A stretch of 63,755 bases of DNA, the filler included, from Perkinsus chesapeaki ATCC PRA-425 (lineage: Eukaryota; Protista; Perkinsozoa), in NCBI GenBank assembly GCA_013115145.1. It is 6 parts of 6 records of this genome, joined end to end, with 100 filler letters (N's around TTAATTAATTAA, not from the genome) between each part and the next. Parts side by side here need not be neighbours in the genome. Positions count along the whole stretch, not along the records: positions 25,234 to 43,618 come from JAAPAO010000664.1; 5 more parts are not named here. The stretch is one strand, 5' to 3'. Shown piece after piece: positions 25,234-43,618 of this stretch (positions are counted from its first letter, which is position 1; each line of letters starts with the position of its first letter). The position numbers and the translations under genes are program-made. The notes beneath the pieces are model-generated. The model was not told the DNA's origin. It was given only the letters and a program-made list of their open reading frames with translations, and searched no databases.

Positions 25234-26871
25234 CTGGAATGGCTAGTAGACACTCACACAAATGGGACATCGCTAAGAAATACAATTGTGTAACACTCAG
25301 TCTACAGTATGCTTGTCAGATTTAGTTGGGGTCTCCATGGTGATGATGGTAACTTGTTCCATGGTAGCGGATTGCATCATTCAACAGCAGCCTTCAGCAG
25401 ATCATTTGGACCTGGGGATACCATTGGTGAGATGCGACTTGCATCTTAGGTCTCTCTGACCCGTCTAAGAATTTCAGTAATCTACCTTTTTTTGATGGCT
25501 CTAAAATGCTCTTCCGCTGGCCTCGGGGCGAGGGGAGTACTTCTTGCACTAGTTTGGACTCAAAGGACTCAGGCAGTATAATTAATCGCTCGCCTGGAAT
25601 ACCGCGCCGTGAAATTCTTGCTTGTGTAAAATTAGGGAACCGATGATCGTAGTCTCGCCACCATTAGAGTGACTCCCTTGGAGTCGTGAAAAGTATCGAA
25701 CTGCGATGCATTAGACTTCATACTTTTCAACGGGTTTCTTTAAGAGAAATTTCTGATATTTCGTACTCGATAGAGAATCTTTTCTGTCACGTATTATATC
25801 TTGAAACACTTTTTCTAGCCCGACGAACAAATGTAATGCTCAATGATCCCCTGGCCGATTCAGAATTGCTGAATCAGCAGGCACCCGTTTACATACACTT
25901 AACATGGCCGATTCTTGTCCATTGTCGAACTTGTTCGATTACCGCATGTCCTAAGACGAATATAAAATGCTTTTTCCCCAGGTTGCGGGATTAACTACGA
26001 CAAGAATACAATATTCTATACCCTTAATGGAGAGTACATCGGCGATGCCTATTCTTTCCATGGTCAGCCTTTTAGAAGGCGCTTATTGCCGATGATCGGA
26101 CTCGGCACCGAATGGACGGTGAAAATTAATCTTGGACAGGACCAGTTCCTCTATCGCGAGCTGCCATCACCGCTTTCTGTTACACTCAAGGACCTGGCTG
26201 ATTACAGTATATCAAATGGGTGGGTGAGGACAGTTAAAACCGGAAGGGATGGCGCGATGAGGATAAGAGGCTCGATTGTAAGAAGACTCATGATGGCAAC
26301 AAACGAGAGTGATAGAGCGATCGCCAGCACGCTCCAGCCAGCGGTGACCCAGTTTAGCTCAGATGAAGAGGGAGGTGATGACCGGGCAGAGCAGCTAAGC
26401 GACGAAGACGTTCTCCTGTTTGGGGATGATGTAACTAGTGCAGACCCCGAGGATGATTCGGATTATTTTGGTGATGAGTGGATGAATGACGTCGGAGTTG
26501 GGGAGCTCCCATTTGATATTGAAGAAGAGATGCATGATGATGGACGATACTTCGAGGTTATACCTGCGTTTGATGATGACTTTGATCTGATACCTGGCCA
26601 AGTCGACATGGTCGAGGTCGATGGGTATGATTTAATTCCCAGTGATGGCTTGGATGTTGACGAGTATGATTTCATTTCCAGCGATGGCTTGGATGTTGAA
26701 GAATATGATTTCATTTCCAGCGATGGTTTGGTGGATATGGATGAACTTGGCGGGGTCATCAGTGAATCACCATTTGCGGATGTCTCGGAACCTGAGCCGA
26801 TTATAGTATCATCTGGTGACAGTGACGACTTCGACGATATGCCAGTCTATTTTGAAATAACGTCTGATTAA
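25234..26871 (+). CDS. SPRY-domain protein (RanBP9/Ssh4-like) with long acidic tail, 5'-truncated by the spacer
   Basis: SWGLHGDDGNLFHG...FGPGDTIG (~25325-25428) and RRLLPMIGLGTEWTVKINLGQDQFLY (~26075-26155) match the SPRY start and end motifs. Confidence 0.8.
26626..26736 (+). repeat. 39-bp coding tandem repeat x ~3 (YDFISSDGLDVEE)
   Basis: Units start at 26626, 26665 and 26704. Confidence 0.9.
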
Positions 26872-27766
26872 GAATCTCTCATTGTAATATTCACTCACTC
26901 TCATTAACTATATAATGGAATCATTTTCTCCCAGTTCAACAACTATCATCATCTCATTTTATTGATACGTTTCGGTCATTGTCTGATTTGTTGTTAATAA
27001 TTGAGTTGTACTGTGGATGAAGAACACTTCATCAGCTGTTGTGTATCAAAAACGGGAGCAATCAAACCAAGGTACAGCTTAGTTGAGATGCTCGTTGGAG
27101 GCAGTCGTTGCGATCGTCCGCACAATTAGGCATACCGATGCATGAGCCCTGGCACTGCCAGGCAGTATAGTCTCATTTACCCTGAACTAGAAATTTCCTC
27201 TAGGAATCCTAGTAATACCGTGGTAAAAGAGCATAAACCAGGTTACCCTGGTTACCAGGGATACTCCCAGATTCTCTGGGCTTCGAAAGTCAGGCTGACT
27301 TTGAAGAGCACCGCTAACTTAATCAGCGTAGCACCCCGGGTGGGATTTTCTCCTTCCGACATGCCAAAGAAAGAAAGGAACACCGAACAATCCAACCAAG
27401 ATGTTTGTTTGAGCCGTGCGCCATTCCGCAGTCAAAATGGGGGCACGCGCTCATCCCTCTATGACTTGGCTTACGACATTTTAACGCGCTAATGGCAAAC
27501 GCGATCACCGTGGTCGTAATTTACCATGTTTAAAAGTATCGTTGATAGGGAAGGAGCTGGCTTGAACTGAAGACTGGTAGCAGGTCAATGGCGAGCGAGT
27601 ATACTTCCCTTCTGCCGTTCCTGTCTCCTTCGAGCGATTTGTTATTTCCAGAGCTATAACTTAGTTCGGAAGTGAAGATATCTTGTAACTTCTGCGCTGA
27701 GTGTAATCGAAATTCAAGATCATCCGTAAGACTATTACAGTCTGTATTTTATAGATATTCAAGGTA

Positions 27767-28860
27767 ATGGCCCTCCTCTCCAAGTTGGTATCCTGGGCAA
27801 CCCTCGGTTTCGCTAACGGATCCCCAATATCCTTACCTTTCAAGGATAACAACGTCATCTTAATGCTTGATGGTTAGCCAACCACCCTTTATTTGGATAC
27901 TGGGTCACCAGCTAGTTTCGCCATATACGGAATACGAGAGACGCTATGGTCCGGGTAGCTGCAGCACTCTTGGAGCCTGTTTTTTCTGTACGTCTAGCAA
28001 TCCCTGCAATGGCACCTTTAAAAGTATTGTAATTCACTTCGGTGATGGTCATGTTTACAAATTCGTGGAGCACAAAGTTTCTCTCGGTTTTGGTAATGTG
28101 GTAGTCCCCGATTTCAGGATCGGCTTGGCGGTCGACTACTACAACAAGTACGGGAGGGAAGTTAGAGTTCGAGGTTTTCTTGGGCTCTCATACAGCCTCG
28201 TTAGTATTCCTGTGACATTTCTAGACCATCTGCGTCAGCGCAATGTTATAAAGGATCTCGCTTACTCGGTTCGTACCAACGGAGCCGCCTTATCCTTTGC
28301 TGGTAATATCACATTGGATGATACACGCATGACTGAAAGCAGAGTAGTGCGTCGTACTAGAGACCCAGCAAGTTTTAAACAATGTGTATCCATTCCCCTT
28401 TGGCCAGTGAGGTTTCTCGCCAGGCAAGGTGGGCTGCTGAATCGGCATTATATGGTTTACGATGAAAAGGTGAAGAAGGACGGACCCTACCAGGGCCACG
28501 TGGATACTGGTACAAATGTTATCGCTATCCCTGAAAGTGACTTTGACTGTTTCAAACGAGTTACAAAAGGGATTTTACGGTTTGAGCGTTCCTCGGGGAA
28601 TTACGTGGTCCACAGAGAAAATGTTTCTCATTTACCTACACGCATTCCAGCTCGGAGAAGCACCCAACCAAATCGATATTAGAATTCACGCAAGGCATTA
28701 CGCTTCTGAGTGTGGGCACAGGCGATGTAATGTAAGAGTTGACAATACTCCTATGGCGGAGCCTATACTGGGACATCCTTTCTTTTATGCTTACGATGTT
28801 GGATTTCATCTTTCTGGTGAGAAACCATACATTACTATTCAGGAAAGTGTTAACTACTAG
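27767..28860 (+). pseudogene. Pepsin-like (A1) aspartic protease pseudogene
   Basis: MALLSKLV...MLDG*PTTLYLDTGS carries a premature TAG where the paralogue has Q. Frameshifts at ~27925 and ~28638 relative to the paralogue. Second motif HVDTGT. Confidence 0.85.
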
Positions 28861-30066
28861 TACTGTACGGTGCCTGAGGGAGCAACCGATGTTTATCATC
28901 TGATGAGCTGTTGATGTGTGCAATTAAAGATTATTAATGACGAAAAGGTGTTCTTAATATACTTTGCGGTATAGAAGAAAACTTGTGTTTCTATCTCGTT
29001 CAATTCGACGCTTCCACTTGCCAAATCTAGGTTTGGACAAGTAAATTGGCATCCTTCCTTTTCCCTACTTTCAGATTCGAATAGAGCCGTTGTAGCATCG
29101 AGGTTGCTACTCCTTTGCACAACTAATAGTGATGTTGTGAATACGAGTTATAAACCTCTCAAACGCACTTACTCGTCCTCACTCATATACATACACTGCG
29201 TATGATACACAGTTATCAGCTTCCAGAGTACCACCGTTCAATCTCCTACTACTACCAGGGTTTCACATATACACCTGTGCAGTGCATAGGTGCACACCCT
29301 CACTATTGTTACGACAATTCACATACTCTCCGGGATATTGCGTCGTATGACTTCTAACACAGAAGATTGTTGTGTCTACGATTGTGTTCTAGCTTAGCGC
29401 TGATCTGTTACTTCGCGCCTTCTTTCCAGTTTATATTTTTCCCGTTCCCTTTTTGCGTTGTTACATAGGTAATGCATTACGCATATATAATGCATAGTAT
29501 GCATGACCTATGCGTCTTCCTTGTAGTACTAACTAGGAAGACTTCTAGTGCTTTCTGTGTTGATGCCCACTATAAAGGGCGCAACTTCTTACTCAAAAAA
29601 TATCGCAGATTTCACAGTAGGTTAAATCTTCAGGTTATTAAGAAATAACACAAAATGGCATTTTTAGCTTGAACTACAAGCCTTCAAGTCATCTCCTTAA
29701 ACATTAGATTCTCTCATTCCATTCCACAACTACGACTGCCGGATTTCCTCGCTGGGGAGCTTAGGTACGGAAGAACGATGATTGGCACACGATGATAATG
29801 TAGGCTAGATCATCAAGGGCGAGCGCATAATTCGCTACCAACTTCCCCGCTGAACCGTAACCGTTTCCATCGAGCGATATATCATTTCCATTACTGAGAG
29901 GACGTGAAGGTAATCGTTAGTAACAATTTGTTACTAGGATTACGGGCTTCATGGCATATTACATGCGGAATCTGCGTCAACAAATTGGCGCAATTCTGAT
30001 TCAGATTCAGAATTTCTGAATTGTTGCAGACTATTCCGCTTTTTGAGACGATAGTTGATCTTAATA

Positions 30067-31179
30067 ATGGCTCCTTGGTCCAAACTAACCATCCCCGCAG
30101 CACTGGGTTCTTCTACTTATTGTTTGCCTATATCTTTACCTCTCGCTGATAACACCATCACCTTGTCCCTTGATGGCCAATATATAAAGCTCCTAACCGA
30201 CAGCTGCAGTTCAGCAACGTTGGTTGTATACGGACCTGAATACGAAAGGTTGCACGGTGTAGGAAGTTGCAAGACTTTCGGAAGCTGTTACTTTTGTAGC
30301 ACTGAAAATCCGTGCAATGATCTACTGCAACGGAAGAATTCCACAGGTGAGTTCGGGGACGGTGACGTATACATTTATGTCGAACACACTCTGTCCCTTG
30401 ATATCGGTAACATAACAATCTCGGATTTCGAGGTCGGCTTGGTAATCTACTCTTACAACGTTTACGAGGAAAAACCACATGTAGCGAGTATTCTTGGTTT
30501 AGCTTTTGGCCTCAGCGAGCATCCGCCGACATTTCTAGAACAGCTTCGAAAGCACGGCGTGATTGGCAGTCTCTCTTACTCGGTTCGTACTAATGGAGAC
30601 GTGTCAACCTTGACTGGAAACATCACATTGGATGATACGAGCCAGATGCGAGTTGGGACAGACGTCCGCCTTACCAGAGACCCGGCAGAGTTCAAGCAGC
30701 TTGTTGTCATTCCGCTTTGGCCAGTGAGTTTCTTGAACAGTAAAGGCGCACTGCTGAGGTACCGTTATGTGGGCTACGACACGACCACGAAGAAAGATGG
30801 GCCATCCCTGGGTTACGTCGACACTGGTTCAAAAGGGATTCACCTGCCAGAAGGAGATTTTGACAACTTCAGGAGAGTTGCCGATAAGTTTATACGATTC
30901 AGTCGTAAGTTAGATGTCTATATAGTTGGAAAGGAAAATATTTCTCATCTACCTGTACTCGCACTCACTCTCGGAGAAGCACCTCATCAAATCGATATCA
31001 GAATTCAGCCGAAGCATTATGTTTATCGATGTTCACGCAGAAGCTGCACTGTGGGTGTTTTCTGTTATTCCCTTGGGGAGCCTATCTTGGGGCATCCACT
31101 ATTCCATGCCTACGATGTTGGATTCTACCTTTCCAGCGACAGGCCATACACTACCATCCAAGAGAGTGTGAACTACTAG
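30067..31179 (+). CDS. Intronless pepsin-like (A1) aspartic protease homologue with altered first catalytic motif
   Basis: N-lobe KLLTDSCSS, flap FGDG, SILGLAF, C-lobe YVDTGSK and PILGHPLFHAYDVGF. Confidence 0.88.
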   Translation: MAPWSKLTIPAALGSSTYCLPISLPLADNTITLSLDGQYIKLLTDSCSSATLVVYGPEYERLHGVGSCKTFGSCYFCSTENPCNDLLQRKNSTGEFGDGDVYIYVEHTLSLDIGNITISDFEVGLVIYSYNVYEEKPHVASILGLAFGLSEHPPTFLEQLRKHGVIGSLSYSVRTNGDVSTLTGNITLDDTSQMRVGTDVRLTRDPAEFKQLVVIPLWPVSFLNSKGALLRYRYVGYDTTTKKDGPSLGYVDTGSKGIHLPEGDFDNFRRVADKFIRFSRKLDVYIVGKENISHLPVLALTLGEAPHQIDIRIQPKHYVYRCSRRSCTVGVFCYSLGEPILGHPLFHAYDVGFYLSSDRPYTTIQESVNY

Positions 31180-32241
31180 AAATAACGTGTATGCTGTACG
31201 CCAGTGCATCGGTGTTGATATGGTTGGAGCTTGTTATGGTACATAGCAAGCAACTGAGATTATCATGCCTAATTGATAAGCATTAAGGCTTTCGTGTGTT
31301 ACCAGTAGTTGTGCATGATTGTAAAGGTGTATCAAGTTTGTTGCACGTGTCGCGTTGCTTATTCTCGTTCTTCAATGTAATACCTACCACTACTCAACGC
31401 GAAATACGACCTGCCAACTACGCCGAACCTACTACGCCTTATTAGGTAGAGCCTGCGAATAATGTATGAAAAGAACGTGCTAAGCAATAACATTACAGTG
31501 TAATGATTACACTACTCAAGGTGCAGTAATTCCACGCACCGTATGCCTGCGCCACAGAAAGCGTGAAACTTGTCGGTGGCATTAACGATCATGAATATGA
31601 ATTCTTCATTGCTGTGTGATGAATGGGTTCGGTATCCACATAGAGAGGTTACAGTAGAGATCCCTACCGGAAATAAATCAAGTTCTTGCGTGCAGATCTA
31701 GTATAATAATAGCGTAACATTAACAAAGTTGCCCCATCTCATGGGAATTGCACCAAACCTGAAAGACCTTTTAGAGCCGTTCTCAGTATCTTGCTACCGC
31801 AGATAACCCGTTGCGAAGAGCAAGGTTCGGCGCGCGAAGTCGGTGAGCTGTGTGGCTTCACTGCCCTTCTAGTGATAATGTGTTGATGCTATGGAGAGTA
31901 AACTGTTCGTCAATCCCCTTCTCGGCCTATTCCATCCATCACTTCCCGTTAAACATGGAAGATTGGCTGATCCATCGAAAAAACGAGGTAAACTACAACT
32001 TTTCCATTCCATCCTGTCTGGAAATGTTGTCCACTTAACCCCATTGTGCAGACCAGACGGCTAAGATACGGATTCCTCCACAAGGAGGTATAACATACGA
32101 TCTCTGTCTTGACTTCCTTTTCGGAGACAGCGACGTTCACCCTATTAAACCGGTGATATTATGTGGACGTCGTGAAGGAAGGCTCCTTGGAGGGATGCGG
32201 AGGAATTTGACACGGGATGCAGGTCACGCTCGGGACCGATC

Positions 32242-35200
32242 ATGGAAGTGCCTAAGGTTACTTCAGGCACGGGAGCTTCTCCGGAAGATTCGGCCTATGC
32301 TGAGGACATGAGCTACAGTGGGGTTGACAGACCATGGAAGGTACATTCCCGTCAGTTCCGTGACAGGAATCCGGTCTTGTGGGCCAACTTGGACGGCCAA
32401 GGCATTGAGCGTCTGGCAATCGGCGCATTAGCAGTGCATGAAGCGTGGTGTGAAGTTTACATCACGCTCCGTCTCGATCTCAGTGGGAATCTGGCTATAG
32501 TCTCTTCCGATTGTCAATATTTCGCTGATTCATCGGCAAGTAGTGCTATCGACAAGGGAGTATATTGGATCTTGTCACGTTACTCGTATGATATGAGTCC
32601 TATCTCAATGACTCTATCAATTACTACTATCTTCATCGATAACACATATGATTATTGGTCAAATAGGTACGACTGAGGTGGTGGCTGATGATGTACACTA
32701 CCTTTACTGAGGGTCTCGAGGAAGGCTTACAACTCAACGTACCGCTCTGGTGATACAGGAGTGCTCCGCATCCCTGGTTATAGGTCGTCTATTACATGAA
32801 GGAAGACCTGCTGATGTCTCCAGCCACATCGGCTCTCATTTGGGGTATCAGTAGAATACCGTGGCTGCTCAAGCCAATACTAGCGTAACATATGCTTCCT
32901 AGCATATAACAAGCCTGTCTGGGTATAAGCTATCAATATGTTAAACTTCGCGATTAGTTCTCCAGACATCTCAACAAATTGCAAAGCCCAAGTTAGACTG
33001 ATGGAACTGATTGCAAGTGTTGTCGATTAGGTTCATATCGGACTCCATACCGATTTTTGGATACCGCAGGAAGCCTTACCTGATAGGCTCGGCAGGCGTT
33101 CACGTTAGTAAGCGTCCTGCTACTGACGAGGTTCATTAATGGCTCTTGTAGTTTCCCTATGCCTTCTCAGCCTGTGCCATGCCCCTCATAGTTTGATACT
33201 GCCATTGCTGTGTCTGAGCCTGAGGTCAACTGTGCGAGCGTGGACAGCTGCGATCAGTCAGGCTATTCTGGTGAGTCCAACTCGATACGGTACGATACAC
33301 ATTCGCCGTCTGTTATCAAGGACAAGGGCTGAGGTTCAGCCGCTGAACCCTTAGGCCTCTGATGCGCGAAATTATCACTAACTTATTGACACCATTCAAT
33401 CCAGTCAAATTGCTACCAGAATTATATCGTCCAAGCTGTTCTGATTAGCAAAGCATTCCTTTGTATTGTATTGAATTCACTGTGTCTATGGTACAATACT
33501 AACCTACATATGAAATAATAATCAGGTCGAAGATAACCAGGGCGAAGGCAGAGAAGCGATCAACAACATCGTGGCAGATTTCTTCTGGGTTCGCGCCGTT
33601 GGCATTGTCATTTCCAGCTATGGTACAGGTTTATTACTAGAGGTCTTCAAGCCACATACGTAAGACACTTTGGCTAATGCATTACACTGCTTGGAAAGCC
33701 ATGCTTCGCTGTTCATGGGTGCGCTAAGTCGGGCCGCAGCCAGGACACCCGGTGTTATAATTGCTTCAATTGACCCTTGGCAGCTTGAAGTTCAAGCCTT
33801 AAACCGTAATTGGCAGCGGATCGTGGAAGCATTGTTCTCTACTTCTTTTTCCTCGATCCGTCTCTCCACAGTGCAGTATGCCCCTCAAAAGTGACCCCAG
33901 TGGGATCACACCGTGTAAACTACCAATGGGGAGAATTCGCCGAGTACTCTAGACTGACCTGAAGACACATTCACTGAGAAAATACGGGAGTTGTCTTTTC
34001 CATACGATAATAGTATATGTACTAGCAAGGTGGAATCGCTCCACTCAGTGTATAATCCTCGGAAAACATTGCCGACTGTAGTTCTTCGTCACTTTAGGGT
34101 CTTTGTATTATTTTCCCTTTTCCCTGCCACAACTTGCATAACAACATGGTTCATGCACGAAGACCCGTTCCATGTCGGAGTTGAAGGTCCGATTGCCACT
34201 CCGTCTGTAATGCTACCTCACTTTGAGTCGGCTAGGTATTGAAAGAGGACAAGCCTCCTCAACAGCTGGAGAAGCTCCCTCACTTCGTAGCCATCTGGCA
34301 AGGCAGTACAGAGAGATCTCCGAGGCTCTGGTAAATTGCTCAAGAGTTGCTACGCACCTCGTATTTGCTGGTTTCAGGGAGCAAATAGTACGCTCACAGC
34401 GAGCTTGGTGTACTTCTTTTTTTATATGTCCGGTCCGAACTATGACCAAGCTCTTTATTACTATTATATTGATAAGCTGGGCTTCTCCCCGGAGATTATG
34501 GGACAGGTTCAAATGTTCAAAGGGACAGCACGGCTGACCGGTATGGGAATTGATGAGAAACCTTCGACGATTGCTCTGCAGGCCCGCTGCTGTACAAATT
34601 CTTCCTCTCGAGCGTACCCTTCAGTTCCCTTGTAAAAGGTTTGACGATCGTCAGCCTCCCGCTGTAGACAGTTCATCAATAGCACTACAGAATGCATTAT
34701 AGGTACATGTTGCCAGCGCTCCTCACTACAGGAGTGAGTCGCCAGCTTGGCATACCGGATGCGGCGTTTGCAATTTCCGGAGAATATGTTAGAGAGGCTG
34801 TCCTGTAACATGCAGTGAAAGGGAATCGTAGATCATACTCTACAGGAATATCCAAGTTCTTCCACCCATAGCCTTGGCGACGAAGCTTGCGCCTGCTGGT
34901 TTGGAAGGGACGTTATTCTCTCTCTTTACGACAGTACAGAGCCTTTCAGCTGGAACATCGAGGCTGACTTCCTGTAGTGCTTTCTAAGTGACCCCCTCAC
35001 CTCAAGCGTTTTTTCTCAGCTGCGGCAATCGCTATGTTCGGGGTTAACTCTCCGGACTTTCATGGTATCACAGCCCTCATATTTTTCTGTGGGATGAGCC
35101 TGCTGGCACCTTTGCCGGTAAGACTTGATGGTCATGTATAGATTTCTGGAGTCTTGGCTGTTGGTCTGAATCAAAGAACGGGATAACTTTGACAAGGGCT

Positions 35201-35358
35201 CCTTGTTGGGTAGTGATGAACAGGTTCTGTCTGCGATGCCAGAGGACGAGGATCAATCGGCGAACGAAACCTATGCTGTAACCGAAATCATAGAGAATCA
35301 AACGGGAGAGTCGGCTATTGACGCTCATTCATGCGCTCCCATAACCGCCTATGAATAG
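32242..35358 (+). CDS. Folate/biopterin transporter (BT1/FBT, MFS), multi-exon; start uncertain
   Basis: VVYYMKEDLLMSPA, RIPWLLKPIL, FISDSIPIFGYRRKPYL, DQALYYYYIDKLGFSPEIMG, LGIPDAAFAI and ALATKLAPAGLEGTLFSL. Confidence 0.88.
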
Positions 35359-37025
35359 GAGCACCGCCATCGCGTCAACGGCAAGTAGCTCACACGGTTT
35401 TTCTTCTTCGGATGAGCTGTTAGAGATGGTGGGTCTTTCGGGCCACACCAGCCATAGTTGAGTTTTCAGAGCTCGGCAAGACCGATGTCGCCCACATTAG
35501 GAGAAGGACGAAGATTAACAGTGTCCAGCGTGGACTAGGATACATGCCATGGATCACCCATGATGGATCTCCTTGCCTCAACCATGTCAACGGTTTCCTG
35601 ACGCTGCGTTGTGTATGTCATAGTTGGATAGCTCGAATACAACAAGGAAGTCCTTTGAAGAAACCTGGCCTTTAATCGAGCGCTGTCCACCATGCGAGCA
35701 TGTGCCACATTAGCGGAAGACATTTGAGCGGAAAGTCGCATAAAAGTCTCTCGAGTTAGAGAACACAGTTGGCCCGCCGCGGTAGAGCGGCACAACCTTC
35801 TGCTGTATACACACCATCAAACCACAGTCTGAGAGACAGTGTCTGGCTAATACTCCAAGCCTCGAGAGGAGAACCACAGCGAACGAGATAAACGTCTAAC
35901 CGCGGTAATGTCGTCAAGGGCTTGACCCGACTAAGAGTAACAGAGGAGCCTTTGATGATTTTCAATTCAAGCGCATTAAGAACGCTCGCTCTAATGGAAA
36001 GGATACGTCGGAGGAAGGATTGAAACTCTTACCCACACTTTTGCTCCCACTTTTCCCGGTTATTCTAAATTCGTAGCTTGATCTTCGGATGAGTAGGTGC
36101 GGCACATTTTGGCGTCCTGAGGGCACGAGTGCAGTGCTAGGGTTGGTAGCCAGACTTGACCTGGCCCACCCAGAGCGGATTGGTCCAGTGAAAGAGCATA
36201 ATAAACTAACGATGAGCAATTCCTCAAGAGACATCGACGACATTGAGCAAGAAGACACTAACGGCTCCCAACAACTCCACGTCATGGCGAACCAAATACT
36301 ATAATGGATTAGAGAGGTGCTGCTGACATTCTGTATGCGTGCGAGTGTGTGCGTGCTATCGCAAGGCACGCGTGTGCAAGCCGCCGTTGGTTTTCATTGT
36401 ATTAGCTCTGTTGTATACTAGTGCTGTTGAGAGGTTACTCATTGTCAGTTGGTTCTTGCGTGCGTACTTGTCTTCTGCGTCGGTAAATCCACAACATTCG
36501 TAACAATTTAGGTCGTTAAAGCCTTTGAAATAATGAAGTATTTCAACTACTGCTTCTTCATCCTCTCCGGTCTTGTAGAGAGCAAACGTATTATCTATCG
36601 GAGCTGTGAAAAGCGTGACACGTTCTACAAGCAAAGTGCCCTCAAACTCTATTGTCAGGAGGATACTGGAGGGATTCCTTGTTACGTCGCAGTTGACTTG
36701 GATGCCGGTCCTAATGTGAGTTACTTTGCACACTCATGCGATTATAAAGCTTACTGCGCGTTCCCAGTCTACTTCACAGTGGTTGCGGCGCTCCGAAAAT
36801 TTGACGTTTTTGATTTAGAAACCATTCTTAATAGTTAGTAGCTCACTTTTGAAGCCTTCAAATCAAAACAAAGACTCTCGAGTTAGGAGTCTCGGATGCA
36901 CGCAAACCACAGGCTAGACTGTAGTACAGTCACTGTTGAACAGTGACTGTACTACTTTCACATGGTAGAACTTCTACCATGTGAAAGTCTCCCGGTAACT
37001 AGTCATGGTAAACAGTCCACTCCTA

Positions 37026-37834
37026 ATGTTTCTGTTTTCGATAAGAACCTTTCATTATTCAAGAATTCCACCTTCGAGTAGCCGAAGCTGCTGTATCTGT
37101 TTCAGGCGGTAGTGGGATTCATTACGATTACTATACCATACGATATCCCCGAGTTAGAAGAATCTGATGTCAGGAAAATGATGTAGGCGCAAAGATCAAG
37201 CCTCGTCCTTGTGTGCCATGCTTGATACCTCAAGGGTCATCGTATCCTTTGTCAGGCCTGGTGACAAGAAGAGGAAAGGTATATTCGGCACGATTGAATG
37301 TGTAAGCGAGTTTTCCTCATCATTAATAATCCAGGAACACCGCTGACGCTTCGATTCTCAAAACAAACTAATAAAATATTTGGCAGACTTGCAATTCCGT
37401 GGAGCGGAATATTTTTAGACCCAGAGTTTTATCGATATTCGGAATAGAGCTCGAAATCTGAGAAACTAGTGATATTGCTTGTCAGTTCGAGGTTTACCCT
37501 GATTACAGAGGACAAGGCATCGGTGCCGAGCTACTCCAGAACAGCATCAATCATGTAAGCATATCTCAATAGTATTTATTCAATACCGTGGGTTCCTTAT
37601 TGTCAAGCATTCCGCCCCCATGCTCGAATTTAAGGTATTCCTTCAGGGTACGACTACCCCTAATTTCCTTGCTATGACCGTGCATGTTCTCCGTAAAGAT
37701 GCACGCGCAATGGGACTGTACAAAAGATATGACTTTGTCGAAGTCTTCAGTAAGTCTGTTACACTGTCGTTCGAAGACAACGTGTAGTGTTTTCAGAAGA
37801 TGAAAACTACTTCCACCTCGCTCGGTATTATTGA
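37026..37834 (+). CDS. GNAT-family N-acetyltransferase, multi-exon
   Basis: Motif A FEVYPDYRGQGIGAELL (~37485-37540) and motif B TVHVLRKDARAMGLYKRYDF (~37675-37735). Confidence 0.78.
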
Positions 37835-40145
37835 TTGTGTGTGGCGCCACAAAAGCAATTTTGAGATCTCATTGGCATCGGCTTATGGGCTACTCCCAAC
37901 GGGGATATTCTCGGATTCACTCATGTCTAAAAGTGCCCCACTGCTCCTACCTTTCAAATGATAGTAACAAATACTTTTTATTCTTACTTAGACAGAGCTA
38001 CTAAGTACCCGCTACTAGCATATCACTAGTGAGTCAAAGCCGCTGAGTTATGATAGTTCTGTAAGTGGAGTAATAATATCCACTGTCCACTACTAGTGGA
38101 CCACTAGGTATACAAGCAACACTTGCTAGTGACAATAGTGTACTGGTGAAGACCGAGAACAAGCTCGTGTCCTTCCGGTTGAGAATTCGTTTTAGGTCTA
38201 TGTCTGATAGAGCGAGTTCCGGGACAATCTTGAGCGTCGGTAGAGAAAGAAAATTAACGAGAATTGTCGAAATCTGAGAAACTTAGTCACGTGGCCACCG
38301 ACGAACGTGAGTTCGCCATCACCAAGTGGGAGACACAAGTATTAGTAACAATGACAAGAAAATTAGTAGCGGGGGTACCCTGTCATTGCTATCGGGTTAT
38401 GCGAATCACTCTCAAAATACCTCCTAGTGCCAAGAATATCGGGTAAAGAGATCAAAGGCAGCTCGATGAGGTCCACTAAAAGTTACGCTCGTGGAACTGC
38501 ATGAGACTCAATCGTTCTGTCGTAAGCGGCAGCCAGATGGGAAGTATCCATTCTGACTGCCTGAAGTGATCAGGCTTGAGTCGTGTGACTCACACGATAT
38601 GCGATTTTGGGAAAAAGCGCATATGTAGTGAAAAAGGGTAGCAAGACTTGCTGAGCAAGTATTTCTGGAATTCCTGGTTCCAGTCAGACTGGCAGTGCCA
38701 GTCAGAGGTTCTGACTCAGAACCGCTGCACTCAAGCTGCCATAGTTTTCCAAGCTAGGGGCAAATGACAAGCGCTATTGCACAAGAGAATCAGGAATGTC
38801 AATCCGGGTCCATGATGGACCGTGACGGTCCGACCGTCCATGCATTCGATGGAATGCAGACTCTGCATTGGAGGGTAATACGAGTTTGTTCGACAAATTT
38901 TGTCACGATATATCTCGTTGCAGTTTGTTCAGATTGAATCATTCCTATGCCTACAAGGTCCGGGGATTCCCCGATGACATCGGGTGAATAATAGCATTGT
39001 TCTCTCAGGTTACGCCGTAACCGTAAGCGCAGACTGCTCTAACAATGGAAGCTTCATAGTGAAACAACTAGGCTAGTGAGTTACTGGCAGTGAATCACTG
39101 CCAGTGACGCAGCGTCACTGACGCTGGCCTTCTCTATCGGCTGTAGTTCGCACTACACTCGTGCTGCCACGAGTGTGGCACGCTCGCAAGTCTCCACTTC
39201 CCCAAGCACTTGTGATGTCGATTTTTGACAGCATCAAGTTGTGCGGCACAAGCTGGGGGTCGCACAAAAAGTCGGCTGCTTAGAGCAGCCGCATTCAGCC
39301 TCACTGGACTCCAGTGGCTGGACTACTACTCTTGAGAGGGCTACAAGCGAATGCGGGCACAAATTGTATCTTTACTACCGTACAATACGATTACTATTGA
39401 TACCGAAGGTCCTGATGCAGCAGTCCTGGATACTCATAGGGTTAGTATCGCTGCAGAGAACTGTGATGGCCTGATCTTTGACCAGACACAGTCACATGAG
39501 GAATACTTGTATAAGTAGCCTCGAACGTGCCAGGTAAGCTGCGCAAGGTAAGAGTAGTGTATATCGTGAAGCCTTGATTGTCATAGTGACAATATCACTG
39601 ACAATTTTTCAGGGCCTGAAATGGCTGCAGAATTGCAACGAGCGTACGGTTTCATCCGCGCCTTCATGACTGTCATGACATGACATGATGTCTTCATCAT
39701 GGTCAATCTATGGTAGAGACATTACATATGTCGGAGTGAACCCAGCGGGGTTCGAAGCTCACACTTCTACGTACCGCTAATAGTGTCCCCATTGGAGACC
39801 CCCCAAGTACCAAGTCAATCACCGCGCGCTCCGTATAGCGTATACAGTATCCGGGATACTCAAACGGCTACCGGTTTCTTCATTGCTAGCCGCACAAGCG
39901 GAGCGAGTCACACACCGCGTGTTATGCTAACCGTGACACTGTCACGGTGTATATGTAAACGGTATGAAGATAGGACAGTTGGTAATATAACCAGTTAACC
40001 TATTACATAGTCGCTCGTGGGAACTGTAATATACCCTCATGCCTGCCAACAGGAAACCTCTTGTGCACAAGTAGATGATGAACGTGTAGGCCTTTGAATC
40101 GGTGACACCCACGCCGCGGAGGCCCTTGACGAATTTTGGCGGACG

Positions 40146-40215
40146 GGATTTTTAGCTTGCGCGAAAATTGTGTTTTACGGGGGTAATGCACAATTTTCGC
40201 GCAAGCTAAAAATCC
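40146..40215. repeat. Perfect 27-bp inverted repeat with 16-nt spacer (MITE-like hairpin)
   Basis: GGATTTTTAGCTTGCGCGAAAATTGTG / CACAATTTTCGCGCAAGCTAAAAATCC. Confidence 0.85.
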
Positions 40216-42260
40216 ACCCCGCGAAAATTCAACGTGGGGGGTAAAGTGACTTCTGTGACTGCGTCTTGGTAGTATCAAGTTGATACATCCGTATTTCGCC
40301 AATAACTGCGGGCGGGGAACTGGTCGTACTAACCACCGACCGGCAGTTTGGCATCCCTATCATGTCATGATAATCATGATGATACTATCACCATGGTCTG
40401 GCGTAGCCTAGGGATTCCCTGGTAGGGAAGTTTTCTGGCTCGTCATATGGCCGGGCCCTGAACTGTTCCACTCTGCACGAAGTGCACGAAAAGCTACTTA
40501 GCCAATGAATTGAGTCCTACAACGTATCTAGAGCGAAGGCGACCGCCGAGGTCTTTGTGATATAGTTACAGCATGAGTGCTGAGACGATCGCTGCACGGC
40601 GTGCAGTGTTCATCTGTGTACTGTGCTGTGCTCATCGTTGCCGGGCAACTTGACAGCGCTAACTTGGCACTGCCAAGCTACGCGAAACGTGGGGTGCATC
40701 GGATTCACTGTATCATATCAAACAGGACGTAAACTAAACCGTTCCATGGTAATCGTAGCACAAACCATCCGCAACTCTCACGCAATGTGTCACACAATTT
40801 GTGTGATATCGTTGGCGGGGCCAACTTGGCCAATGATCTCATTCAATCTCCGTCAGCCAACTGGTGTTCAAGTCGTCAATACCAATTGACTGGCGGAGTC
40901 TTGAATTTCGAGATCAAGTTTTCTTGTTCGTCCGACGCAACATCACAATGCTGTTTTTTATGATTTTGAGAGCCTCGATCTCGCACCATAGTTAGTCTCA
41001 TAATGCGACTCACAATATAACTGAATGATTAACGGGATTGAATGATGGGAACTAACTGCAATAGATATGTAGCAGACAGTACCCACCGAGTGCATACCTC
41101 ACACTGCATATGGAGCAAGTTACAGGGGCCGTGCTAGATACTTCCCACTAAAAAGTAAAACTAATAAAGTTTCTATATGCAGGTGGGATGTGATTCCCTG
41201 CGAGAGCTCAGTATCTCGAGAATGTAAACCCACACAGGTTATCCGAGTGGTTCCTAAGACCCTTTGGCTAAGGCCGCTGGACATCCGGGTCTACCCAGGC
41301 CTCTGCCACCAGAGAGGACAGTGGTACCGTCACTGTGACGGCGTCACAGTCTGCGACTTACAGTACTTCGAAGGAGATTAAATTTCCGGGATTCGCGTAG
41401 CCGAATTCGTTTCGCAGGAAGCGAGGATTCTGGATGGCTCACGGTGAGCGGCTCACCCGCAGTACGGTCTCGGCACTGTCAATTGATGGCTTCAGTTGCT
41501 CGGAACTATTGGGTCCTCCTACAGTACGACGCCGAGCCGTCGACTGGTACTATACTGCGATGACCAACGGGTGAGTAGACCGGTCCGGCTCCAAGTTAAA
41601 TTGCTTAACGACGGTTTAACCGGGAGGTAGCCCGTTCAACGGGGAATGTTGACAATCTCGTCCATCGAGAGGAAAGAGATCGAGGTCTTTAGTTCACCGA
41701 CGGTGAATCACCGTGAACTGTTCACGACATGTATAGGATACATTGTATCTTTATTCCTTTAAAAAAGAATGCCCTATCCTCAATTGCTGCAGCAGCAATA
41801 AAGTAGACTACGGTCAATAGTCCTGCAGCTGTACTGAACACGTGTTCTGACAGTCAGAATCTGGAAATCCCGGGATTAAATCGGGAATCCCGATTCGGGA
41901 TTCGCTAAGGACTGCTCCGGGGATTAGAGTTCCGGACAACACGAACCATGTTGCACACTGTGCAGTCCACAGTTGGAAAACTTGTTACTAATATGCTTGT
42001 CAGGGTTACTAATACTTGTGTCATCCACTTCACCTCGCACGAATGACCGGACTAAGTTTGGTGGACTGGCGAACACAAAACCTGTACTGTAGGTCTCCTG
42101 TAGGTTCCTGTTCGCCTCACTGAGCCTTTTAAGTTCAAGACTTAAACGTTAGAGCTATGGTATGGATGTTCAGTTAACATTGTTTACTGAGCATTACATG
42201 TGCGCTCTACGTGCAATGTGTTTATATCACATTGTAGATATTTTTCTGCTGTTCACTCGG

Positions 42261-42727
42261 ATGATCTACTCACTTAAACTACTCCTTCAACTATTTATCC
42301 TAGGGTACGTCAGTAGTGGTTATGAATATCCCCGACAACCCTATCCTATCAAGCCTTATGATGGTACGTATGGTGTGACTTACAAGAACCCTTTGAAAGG
42401 GTCCCTTTCCTCAATTTGAGGGTCATTGTCAACTCGCCCGATCAAACTATGCAGATCACCTTCAGCTGCGGCTCTGGTGCTAGGCCATATGATTACACAT
42501 TCAAGTTCGACGACGTTGGTGACACTCTTGACCTTGATGTGGTCTCCGGCGGTACTATCATTGAACCGTACAGGGACATGCTGCGTCAGTTCGGTCAACG
42601 TTGCCCGTGGTTTGAGAAAGGACCGCCTGTCATGCCAAGTCTACAGTACTACATCGTGAATGTGGCGAACAATACTCTTAAAACCAGTATAACTCAGAAG
42701 GCCGTCTATTTGATGAAGCAGAAGTAA
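42261..42727 (+). pseudogene. Small secreted-protein gene with a single frameshift (or sequence error)
   Basis: The signal-peptide frame MIYSLKLLLQLFILGYVSSG...YDGTYGVTYKNP stops at 42419. An overlapping frame continues ...RVIVNSPDQTMQITFSCG... to 42727. Confidence 0.5.
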
Positions 42728-43618
42728 ACAAAATAACGAAATCGGCCTCCGAAATGGGTTGCTTGCACCAGGTCATCGTACACGGTTAGGAGCACCAAGT
42801 TATTCGGAGTGGCTGATTCTACTTTCTGCAGGTTTATGTCGATTTTCTTTTACCTATTAATTCTATTATTATTGCTTTTGGAATCGGTCTCAGACTTTTT
42901 GTCCAGCAACTCTCTGTTCAATATTTAACCGTTCGTAATGCGCAGATAGATGAGTGGCCGTAATGTCGAGGAAAACCTTTCTATGGATTACACGGTATGG
43001 AAAACTCAGTATCCAATACTGTTCTGTCAATTGGTATAACACAACCTTATCTGGGTATTGCGTTTACTGATGCGGGCAGATAGTGATAGTTCATCCCCAC
43101 ATTGTTGAGTTAGTAACTCATTGAGTTACTAACTCCGAGTTACGTAGTAATAGCGATCACCTCTAGAATAGATTGATCGATGAGAGACATGACTATCGCG
43201 TTGCTTGAATCTATTAGCCATTCTGTAGTGTCGCAGAGGCTGCAATATAGATCATAAAGGTAAACGCAATACTCTTGGCTAAGTAGAGAATGAAGACAGA
43301 AGGATCGAAATTATAGTCTTGAATTCATAATTTCATCGGTAATTACTGATATCAGTGTTGTTGTACTGTATTTATAGCAACGCTTGTCCGTTTAACTGAT
43401 CTGGGTTAAAATGGGTAAAAAGACGTCATAGTAGTATTTTGCACAGGGCGATAGCACGATCGCTGAGATGGTTCTACGAAGAGAGCCACAATCGGTGTGG
43501 GCCTTATAAGAGATACGAAATGTTAAAGTACTGGATGAAAGCATCTCTGTTCCATCTCGGAGATGGAAGTGGGAAAGTTGCGAAACGTGCTTTACTTCGC
43601 TCCGTCGTGACATCAGTT

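Follow-up and report, generated by a model that had tools for sequence, protein, structure and literature searches.

How does non-coding DNA come to be filled with chained palindromes whose arms are unrelated in sequence and which turn around a single central base? The question is raised by a gene-free segment (38085-41903) of a window from the genome of Perkinsus chesapeaki ATCC PRA-425; the window is the whole stretch presented, 63,755 nt long, and its positions are used throughout. The analysed piece is the complete 18,385-bp contig JAAPAO010000664.1 of assembly GCA_013115145.1, which occupies positions 25234-43618. The palindromes resolve into a 22-bp unit, referred to as a footprint, that is built from one 8-bp sequence and is probably the excision scar of a hAT-like cut-and-paste DNA transposon.

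Odd-centred palindromes and their 22-bp unit

Perfect inverted repeats with a minimal spacer were counted in the contig and compared with 50 dinucleotide shuffles of it. At a spacer of 1 nt, 97, 75, 56 and 23 palindromes have arms of at least 5, 6, 7 and 8 nt, while the shuffled means are 19.9, 5.5, 1.4 and 0.26. Neither neighbouring spacer is enriched, with no palindrome having arms of at least 7 nt at a spacer of 0 (0.94 expected) or 2 nt (0.90 expected). A mild excess at spacers of 3, 4 and 5 nt is read as decayed or compound copies. Arm lengths of the 56 palindromes are 7 (33 cases), 8 (13), 9 (6), 11 (1), 14 (1) and 17 nt (2), which is a floor of 7 nt with roughly geometric chance extension and no smooth distribution. 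The central base is G in 20 of them, C in 14, T in 11 and A in 11, and the arm sequences are mutually unrelated.

An earlier, sequence-only reading had counted about 25 such palindromes in the segment 38085-41903 by eye, describing them as chained, with unrelated arms and with any of the four bases at the centre. This description is borne out, and its count is exceeded: 37 odd palindromes in the segment have arms of 7 nt or more, and all eight that had been cited as examples lie at the positions given for them. Chaining appears as a sharp preference in the distance between neighbouring centres. For arms of at least 5 nt, 19 pairs are spaced by exactly 7 nt, and any other distance up to 30 nt is represented by at most 4 pairs.

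When two palindromes have 7-nt arms and lie 7 nt apart from centre to centre, they form one 22-mer of the structure a-X-b'-X'-a'-X-b, in which |X| = 6. Put differently, an 8-mer T = aXb is replaced by T(1-7)+revcomp(T)+T(2-8), revcomp (or rc) being the reverse complement, so that 22 bp stand in place of 8 and 14 bp are gained. A scan of the contig covered the general form T(1..t-1)+rc(T)+T(2..t) for t = 4-13, and 100 Markov-1 resamples served as a control. For t = 8, where the form sets 14 constraints out of which mismatches are counted, the scan disclosed 10 perfect structures, 17 with up to 1 mismatch, 37 with up to 2 and 56 with up to 3; the corresponding resample means are 0.00, 0.00, 0.04 and 0.88. 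Perfect matches are absent at t = 7 and t = 9, while there is one at t = 6 and three at t = 5 (0.27 expected). Of the 56 palindromes counted above for arms of 7 nt or more, 42 share their centre with a centre of a t = 8 structure at up to 3 mismatches, and 31 of the 37 in the segment 38085-41903 lie within such structures.

Virtually every inverted block is 8 nt long, and the flanks dictate both turn bases. The turn bases were assessed on 19 loci from three Perkinsus species that carry a perfect X-n-X'-n-X with X = 6 nt. In 32 of 38 instances the central base complements the outermost base of the 8-mer (25% expected by chance), the first centre being complementary to the base after the third block and the second one to the base before the first block. 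Centres are therefore templated, which rules out untemplated addition. Simple snap-back of a 3' end is likewise ruled out, because a strand cannot copy a base that it has not yet reached.

Nesting, allelic states and occurrence in other Perkinsus species

Overlapping footprints were disentangled by greedy collapse, in which each 22-mer is reduced to its 8-mer, best match first, and the sequence is then rescanned. This procedure recovered 11 events without mismatches, 20 with up to 1 and 40 with up to 2, whereas none were obtained from ten control sequences (0/10). Once the perfect event at 41693 is collapsed, another perfect 22-mer emerges at 41691, and collapse of the event at 38817 completes an older one at 38807. 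Since a perfect 22-mer would arise by chance after a deletion with a probability of only about 4^-14, the collapse reverses real successive events, and such nesting produces the chaining described above. In the same way, the footprints at 39087 and 39104 account for the palindromes with 11-, 9- and 8-nt arms listed in the sequence-only reading, and nested events at 36917 and 36931 built the palindrome with 17-nt arms at 36921. A solitary palindrome with 17-nt arms adjoins that chain (36954-36988) and is read as fitting a long tract of palindromic (P) nucleotides.

All 40 reconstructed 8-mers differ from one another, which rules out a single dispersed repeat or miniature inverted-repeat transposable element (MITE) family with fixed arms as the cause of the enrichment. 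A repeat search of the contig found no family among the palindrome arms. Taken together, the 40 events make up 560 bp of the contig. The segment 38085-41903 contains 22 of them, about 6 per kb, amounting to 308 bp or 8% of its length, which repeated insertion and excision would have added. None of the 40 events falls into the single-exon coding sequence (CDS) of the aspartyl protease or into the span of the SPRY gene. Seven are located within the spans of the BT1 and acetyltransferase genes, and as these spans are far longer than the coding sequences, the seven events are probably intronic.

Allelic states were examined in Logan contigs of three runs (X1, X2 and X3, from two samples and two studies) over positions 36800-42700. 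These contigs match the reference exactly over long stretches and reproduce 41188-41924 in all three runs with 0 differences. A second, strongly diverged haplotype is also present; one stretch of 604 nt shows 56 differences and 12 gaps. Comparison of the two disclosed sites with and without the unit. The reference has only the bare 8-mer ATGATTAA at 41025, whereas in X1, X2 and X3 the other haplotype is longer there by 14 nucleotides (TGATTGTCAATCAT), and the filled allele reads ATGATTG TCAATCAT TGATTAA, a footprint with 1 mismatch. The opposite state was found at 41333-41393, where the other haplotype has 17 nt in place of 59 nt. This deficit of 42 nt equals the perfect event at 41327 plus two decayed events flagged at 41343 and 41373, and the other haplotype reads CCGTCAC+A at 41327, the predicted empty site. 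In addition, its next base at 41851 is T, as predicted for position 8 of the target at 41845. Another insertion of 14 nt, at 39040, could not be parsed.

Empty sites are thus found opposite footprints in both directions, the reference being empty at 41025-41032 and filled at 41327. Allele differences of whole 14-bp units both ways indicate that the process has been active since the haplotypes split, and in both lineages. By a rough estimate, events would occur per site at about 1-2% of the substitution rate, which would be compatible with a single family that stayed active for long.

The second haplotype, or a close paralogue, was observed at 39126-39731, 40061-40138 and 40985-41172 in all three runs and both samples. 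Its larger differences consist of 52 and 273 skipped nucleotides (41068-41121 and 41530-41804). At two points, read-set contigs turn into unrelated sequence precisely where footprint blocks meet their neighbours: 36847/36848, the start of a solitary palindrome, and 39101/39102, the end of the inverted block 39094-39101. Old scars may have taken up further insertions or been rearranged at these points.

Two further species carry the same structures. In P. olseni, locus L003 (6 kb) contains 2 perfect 22-mers, 6 with up to 1 mismatch and 8 odd palindromes with arms of at least 7 nt, and locus L004 (6.5 kb) contains 3, 6 and 11, respectively. Neither locus has any structure at t = 7 or t = 9 or any palindrome at spacers of 0 or 2 nt. 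The gene-dense P. olseni locus L002 (12 kb) is devoid of all three classes (0, 0 and 0). The P. marinus locus L005 (21.8 kb) has 2 perfect 22-mers, 2 at up to 1 mismatch and 7 odd palindromes, again with no palindromes at spacers of 0 or 2 nt; here, too, the unit length peaks at t = 8. An oomycete locus taken as a control (L006, 27 kb) has no 22-mer, either perfect or with up to 1 mismatch, and 1 odd palindrome.

One P. olseni footprint is perfect in L004 and has 1 mismatch in L003, which points to ordinary decay. The alleles in L003 and L004 are about 1% diverged and show no indel at any footprint, so this comparison is silent on polarity. All structures in the two loci but one are intergenic. 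The exception, GCTCCAA GCTGGAGC CTCCAAC with 1 mismatch at L003:1460-1481, is situated in the last annotated 40 nt of an aspartyl-protease CDS (gene 201-1499). Either the C-terminus was changed by the scar or the annotation of the gene is incorrect.

Probable excision scars and competing explanations

The steps established for hAT elements would, if they also operate in Perkinsus, produce the observed unit. Insertion of an element through an 8-bp staggered cut would duplicate the target T = t1..t8. At excision, the transposase would nick 1 nt into the flank, and the free 3'-OH would attack the opposite strand, sealing each flank as a hairpin whose unpaired tip is the complement of the target-duplication base adjoining the element. 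Host nucleases would then open the hairpins off the tip, leaving a prefix of revcomp(T) on the left end and a suffix on the right end. Such tracts, lying on opposite strands, could anneal in register by microhomology, and fill-in would give T(1-7)+revcomp(T)+T(2-8) whatever the nick positions, that is, a pair of overlapping odd palindromes whose arms are 7 nt long and whose centres are separated by 7 nt. Each footprint would then hold three overlapping copies of an already favoured target, so that new insertions would tend to enter old scars and create chains and nests, and point mutation would later erode the footprints.

Annealing and fill-in would account for a single dominant product with 7-nt arms, 7-nt spacing and 1-nt, templated centres. 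Moreover, each unit needs two copies of one 8-mer, which implies a prior insertion with an 8-bp stagger followed by excision. We infer an origin in the hAT superfamily and microhomology-mediated end joining as the repair route. Ac/hobo/Hermes-type elements have the target consensus nTnnnnAn. In the 40 reconstructed targets, symmetrised, the frequency of T at position 2 and of A at position 7 is 46% over a background of 27%, a weak bias in a small sample that points in the direction of this consensus. TA is not enriched at positions 4-5 of these targets. Buster-type elements have the target consensus nnnTAnnn, and hAT elements duplicate 8 bp of their target and leave the donor site by way of hairpins formed on its flanks (PMC3499496).

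The sequence-only reading had pointed to hairpin-forming enzymes of the hAT type and had proposed an iterative, sequence-independent fold-back process, either repeated hairpin closure and opening at DNA ends or snap-back synthesis, that writes new non-coding DNA. Hairpin-forming hAT-type enzymes fit the templated centres and the 8-bp duplication unit, and iteration and growth of non-coding DNA agree with the nested events and with the length that they have added. Free-running, sequence-independent fold-back and snap-back do not agree with arms and spacing quantised at 7 nt, templated centres and the need for two copies of the 8-mer.

Several observations weigh against excision scars. No convincing element, defined as an 8-bp direct repeat with terminal inverted repeats matching in at least 9 of 12 nt, was found in the contig or in L002-L004; the P. 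olseni loci gave three weak 9/12 terminal-repeat matches, which is chance level. Local open reading frames (ORFs) contain no transposase domain in Pfam, and we know of no transposon-footprint density that comes near about 6 events per kb. Testing whether a flank copy and the inverted block share mutations gave no significant result, and the target-site bias is weak. A third block is not recognisable in 14 of the 56 palindromes, most of which have arms of exactly 7 nt, and the annealing model explains these 14 only through secondary loss. They are attributed to later hits or deletions, which were demonstrated in one case only (38814).

Two further lines were followed and abandoned. Mismatches per block (28, 21 and 14), considered as a trace of divergence between target duplications during residence of an element, do not differ significantly, and the selection of candidates is biased. 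A transposase hidden by footprints in 38040-42035 was also sought, and collapse lengthens ORFs only to 157 and 121 codons, with translations that look non-coding.

A reading of wider reach is possible, though we hold it to be doubtful: Perkinsus may harbour a hairpin-forming cut-and-paste system of very high turnover, either a hAT-like family of unusual mobility or a domesticated enzyme that has no stable element, with 14-bp additions as a major ongoing source of intergenic and intronic DNA. If so, the system would also drive haplotype divergence, and breaks would be repaired almost wholly by annealing hairpin-derived tracts at microhomologies.

Short-range template switching during replication or break repair, of the Loytynoja-Goldman type or as an origin-dependent inverted triplication on a 7-8 nt scale, is an unlikely source of the units. 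The nascent strand would run forward, copy 8 nt on the complementary parental strand and return, and no mobile element would be needed, in keeping with the lack of a transposon in the contig and the scanned P. olseni loci. The product is formally an inverted triplication, with the topology of known template-switch products, and if the switch began one base ahead on the opposite parental strand, the centres would likewise be complementary to their flanking bases. However, there is no known reason for a length of exactly 8 nt, which is demanded by 10 perfect structures at t = 8 and 0 at t = 7 or t = 9, and such events vary in length elsewhere. Template switching predicts no nTnnnnAn-like target bias, nor does it need microhomology-free turns at both ends every time.

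Quite improbable, too, is an endogenous hairpin-forming nuclease without a persistent element, such as a domesticated hAT-like transposase, which would either introduce 8-bp staggered breaks and flank hairpins or insert and remove a tiny or transient substrate. Its structural signature would be identical to that of hAT scars, and it would explain the high scar density without a resident element in the approximately 65 kb of Perkinsus sequence inspected. We know of no precedent for a domesticated hairpin-forming nuclease of this kind. Two copies of the 8-mer must exist before hairpins form, for which ordinary insertion is the simplest source, and the present analysis identified no candidate gene. 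Transposase genes without recognisable element ends do occur in the genus, as Merlin-like transposase ORFs lacking terminal repeats and target duplications were described in P. marinus (PMC8101967).

It is very unlikely that the palindromes are selected functional motifs, either binding sites of dimeric proteins or regulatory RNA or DNA hairpins. Their concentration in non-coding DNA would suit this possibility. Against it, the arms are unrelated, the structure has three blocks and is no simple dyad, and a 1-nt loop cannot form a hairpin. Furthermore, copies decay by point mutation, as between L004 and L003, units are present or absent between haplotypes of the contig, and Rfam gave no match for the focal region. 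An artefact of assembly, amplification or sequencing, for which we found no supporting point, has next to no probability, given identical contigs across the region from two samples and two studies, structures in three species from different assembly projects (P. olseni and P. marinus besides P. chesapeaki), and haplotype alleles that differ by whole 14-bp units.

Known systems and further features of the contig

Excision by hAT-type enzymes, the preferred explanation, has close relatives among known systems. Zhou et al. 2004, the reference that PMC3499496 gives for the hAT hairpin, reportedly showed that Hermes forms a hairpin on the flank after a nick 1 nt into donor DNA. A nick at that place leaves a single unpaired base as the hairpin tip and predicts palindromes with one central base complementary to the flanking base. 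The Hermes mechanism comes from biochemistry on a defined element, and no enzyme was identified in the Perkinsus sequence analysed. Palindromic additions that come from off-centre opening of flank hairpins are also shared with P nucleotides of V(D)J recombination and Transib. RAG and Transib nick exactly at the border, giving palindromes without a central base, and make 5-bp target duplications. In Perkinsus, by contrast, a spacer of 0 gives 0 palindromes against 0.94 expected, and t = 5 is only slightly enriched (3 against 0.27).

Footprints of Ac/Ds, a hAT element, in plants, Saccharomyces cerevisiae and Candida albicans retain both copies of the 8-bp duplication and have palindromic P-nucleotide tracts centred on the complement of the element-adjoining base, as in Perkinsus (PMC5873905, also for Coen 1986, Yu 2004 and Lazarow 2012 as cited therein). 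In yeast, Ac/Ds arms reach 20 nt and joining depends on microhomology (PMC5873905). Ac/Ds footprints are variable, usually of a few nucleotides, and come from single reporter loci after induced excision. In Perkinsus, one full-length product dominates, several copies are present per kb, they are nested, and no donor element is seen.

Short template-switch mutations (PMC5453318) and origin-dependent inverted triplication (PMC4689423) also create forward-inverted-forward structures with perfect hairpin-forming repeats in one step. Their length is variable, unlike that of the Perkinsus unit, and they have no tie to an 8-bp unit or to a target bias. Footprints in rice share the role of DNA-transposon excision as a force that reshapes non-coding DNA, but the 94 excisions recorded over most of the rice genome almost all have deletions or foreign filler, and no stereotyped inverted triplication was reported among them (PMC4423477). 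Inverted repeats of Amoebophrya introners were considered as the same phenomenon and set aside, being intron-terminal and organised in sequence families.

Searches of the accessible literature for palindromes, inverted repeats and hAT elements in Perkinsus, and for odd palindromes, retrieved no prior description. The mechanism would be of a known kind, while its stereotypy, density, nesting and contribution to non-coding DNA appear new. The uniform product suggests that hairpin-capped breaks in Perkinsus are repaired mainly by microhomology annealing. The genome would offer a readable and countable archive of transposon excisions, which normally leave no trace that can be recognised, with about 40 events legible in 18 kb together with their nesting order and haplotype polymorphism. 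A cut-and-paste element would lengthen non-coding DNA by scars and not by copies, creating many perfect hairpin-forming repeats. Perkinsus is a parasite of oysters and clams in which transfection and genome editing have already been reported. The 14-bp units would serve as clean strain and haplotype markers, and they are a likely cause of fragmented short-read assemblies in the genus.

Positions of footprints and called genes are compiled in Table 1.

Table 1. Footprints, target sites and genes along the contig, in window positions; footprints are written as first block, inverted block and third block.
Position	Feature	Sequence	Remarks
25320-26871	SPRY gene		called gene
27150..27165	6-bp-unit variant	TGGCA CTGCCA GGCAG	only perfect t = 6 match
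30067-31179	Asp (aspartyl protease, single-exon CDS)		called gene
31491..31512	perfect footprint	CATTACA GTGTAATG ATTACAC	target CATTACAC
31891-35538	BT1 transporter gene		called gene
36533-37834	acetyltransferase gene		called gene
36917..36988	chain in presumed acetyltransferase intron		nested footprints 36917 and 36931, 1 mismatch each
38085..41903	focal gene-free region		37 odd palindromes, 22 reconstructed events
38086..38107	perfect footprint	TCCACTA CTAGTGGA CCACTAG	
38807..38842	nested pair, younger member	GGACCGT GACGGTCC GACCGTC	perfect, 38817-38838
38807..38842	nested pair, older member	GGTCCAT GATGGACC GTCCATG	1 mismatch, visible only after collapse of the younger
39087..39125	overlapping footprints	GTGACGC AGCGTCAC TGACGCT (39104)	39087 with 1 mismatch, 39104 perfect
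39664..39685	perfect footprint	TCATGAC TGTCATGA CATGACA	
~40357	2-mismatch structure	CTATCAT GATGATAC TATCACC	appears once the 40358 footprint is collapsed
40358..40379	perfect footprint	TATCATG TCATGATA ATCATGA	
41025..41032	empty target site in reference	ATGATTAA	footprint on other haplotype
41327..41348	perfect footprint	CCGTCAC TGTGACGG CGTCACA	
41691..41726	nested pair, younger member	TTCACCG ACGGTGAA TCACCGT	perfect, 41693-41714
41691..41726	nested pair, older member	AGTTCAC CGTGAACT GTTCACG	second perfect 22-mer, after collapse
41880..41901	perfect footprint	ATCGGGA ATCCCGAT TCGGGAT	
42388..42409	perfect footprint	ACCCTTT GAAAGGGT CCCTTTC	

A few footprints with a 5-bp unit were observed, the three perfect ones in the contig and three in the P. 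marinus locus L005. Together with the 6-bp-unit variant they could represent a second element family or an alternative repair outcome.

Two other repeats were inspected in the footprint-rich region, and neither could be tied to the scars. Inverted repeats of 45 nt (38324-38368 and 41986-42030, 87% similarity, 3.6 kb apart) bracket the region, and a third copy is present at about 25290-25345. They carry repeated ATTAGTAAC-like motifs and have CACC on both sides, and read depth is raised at the right copy. As ends of an element they were rejected on two grounds: their flanks share only CACC and not 8 bp, and similarity to the third copy runs past the supposed terminus. The second repeat is a near-perfect palindrome of 100 bp (40131-40230) with 48-nt arms at 88% and a 4-nt spacer, the repeat extending to about 40239. 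Its read depth is several-fold raised in X1 and X2 and not in X3. Contig ends at 40131 and 40239 show other genomic contexts, and the repeat looks dispersed and MITE-like. An interpretation as a MITE with an 8-bp duplication was dismissed, no target duplication being recognisable.

No gene is called in 37834-41179, the latter position being the end of the annotated locus retrieved. The aspartyl protease of the contig is closest to P. olseni proteins (35-37% identity). It forms a tandem with an upstream paralogue at 27867-28860, as direct repeats of 71-75% identity; the upstream copy, which is uncalled, comprises two overlapping ORFs and may be a pseudogene or contain an intron. The SPRY protein shares 66% identity with a P. 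marinus protein and 99% with an MMETSP transcript, and the two proteins together point to a Perkinsus species other than P. olseni and P. marinus. Within the SPRY gene a 39-nt (13-codon) repeat occurs three times in tandem at 26614-26730.

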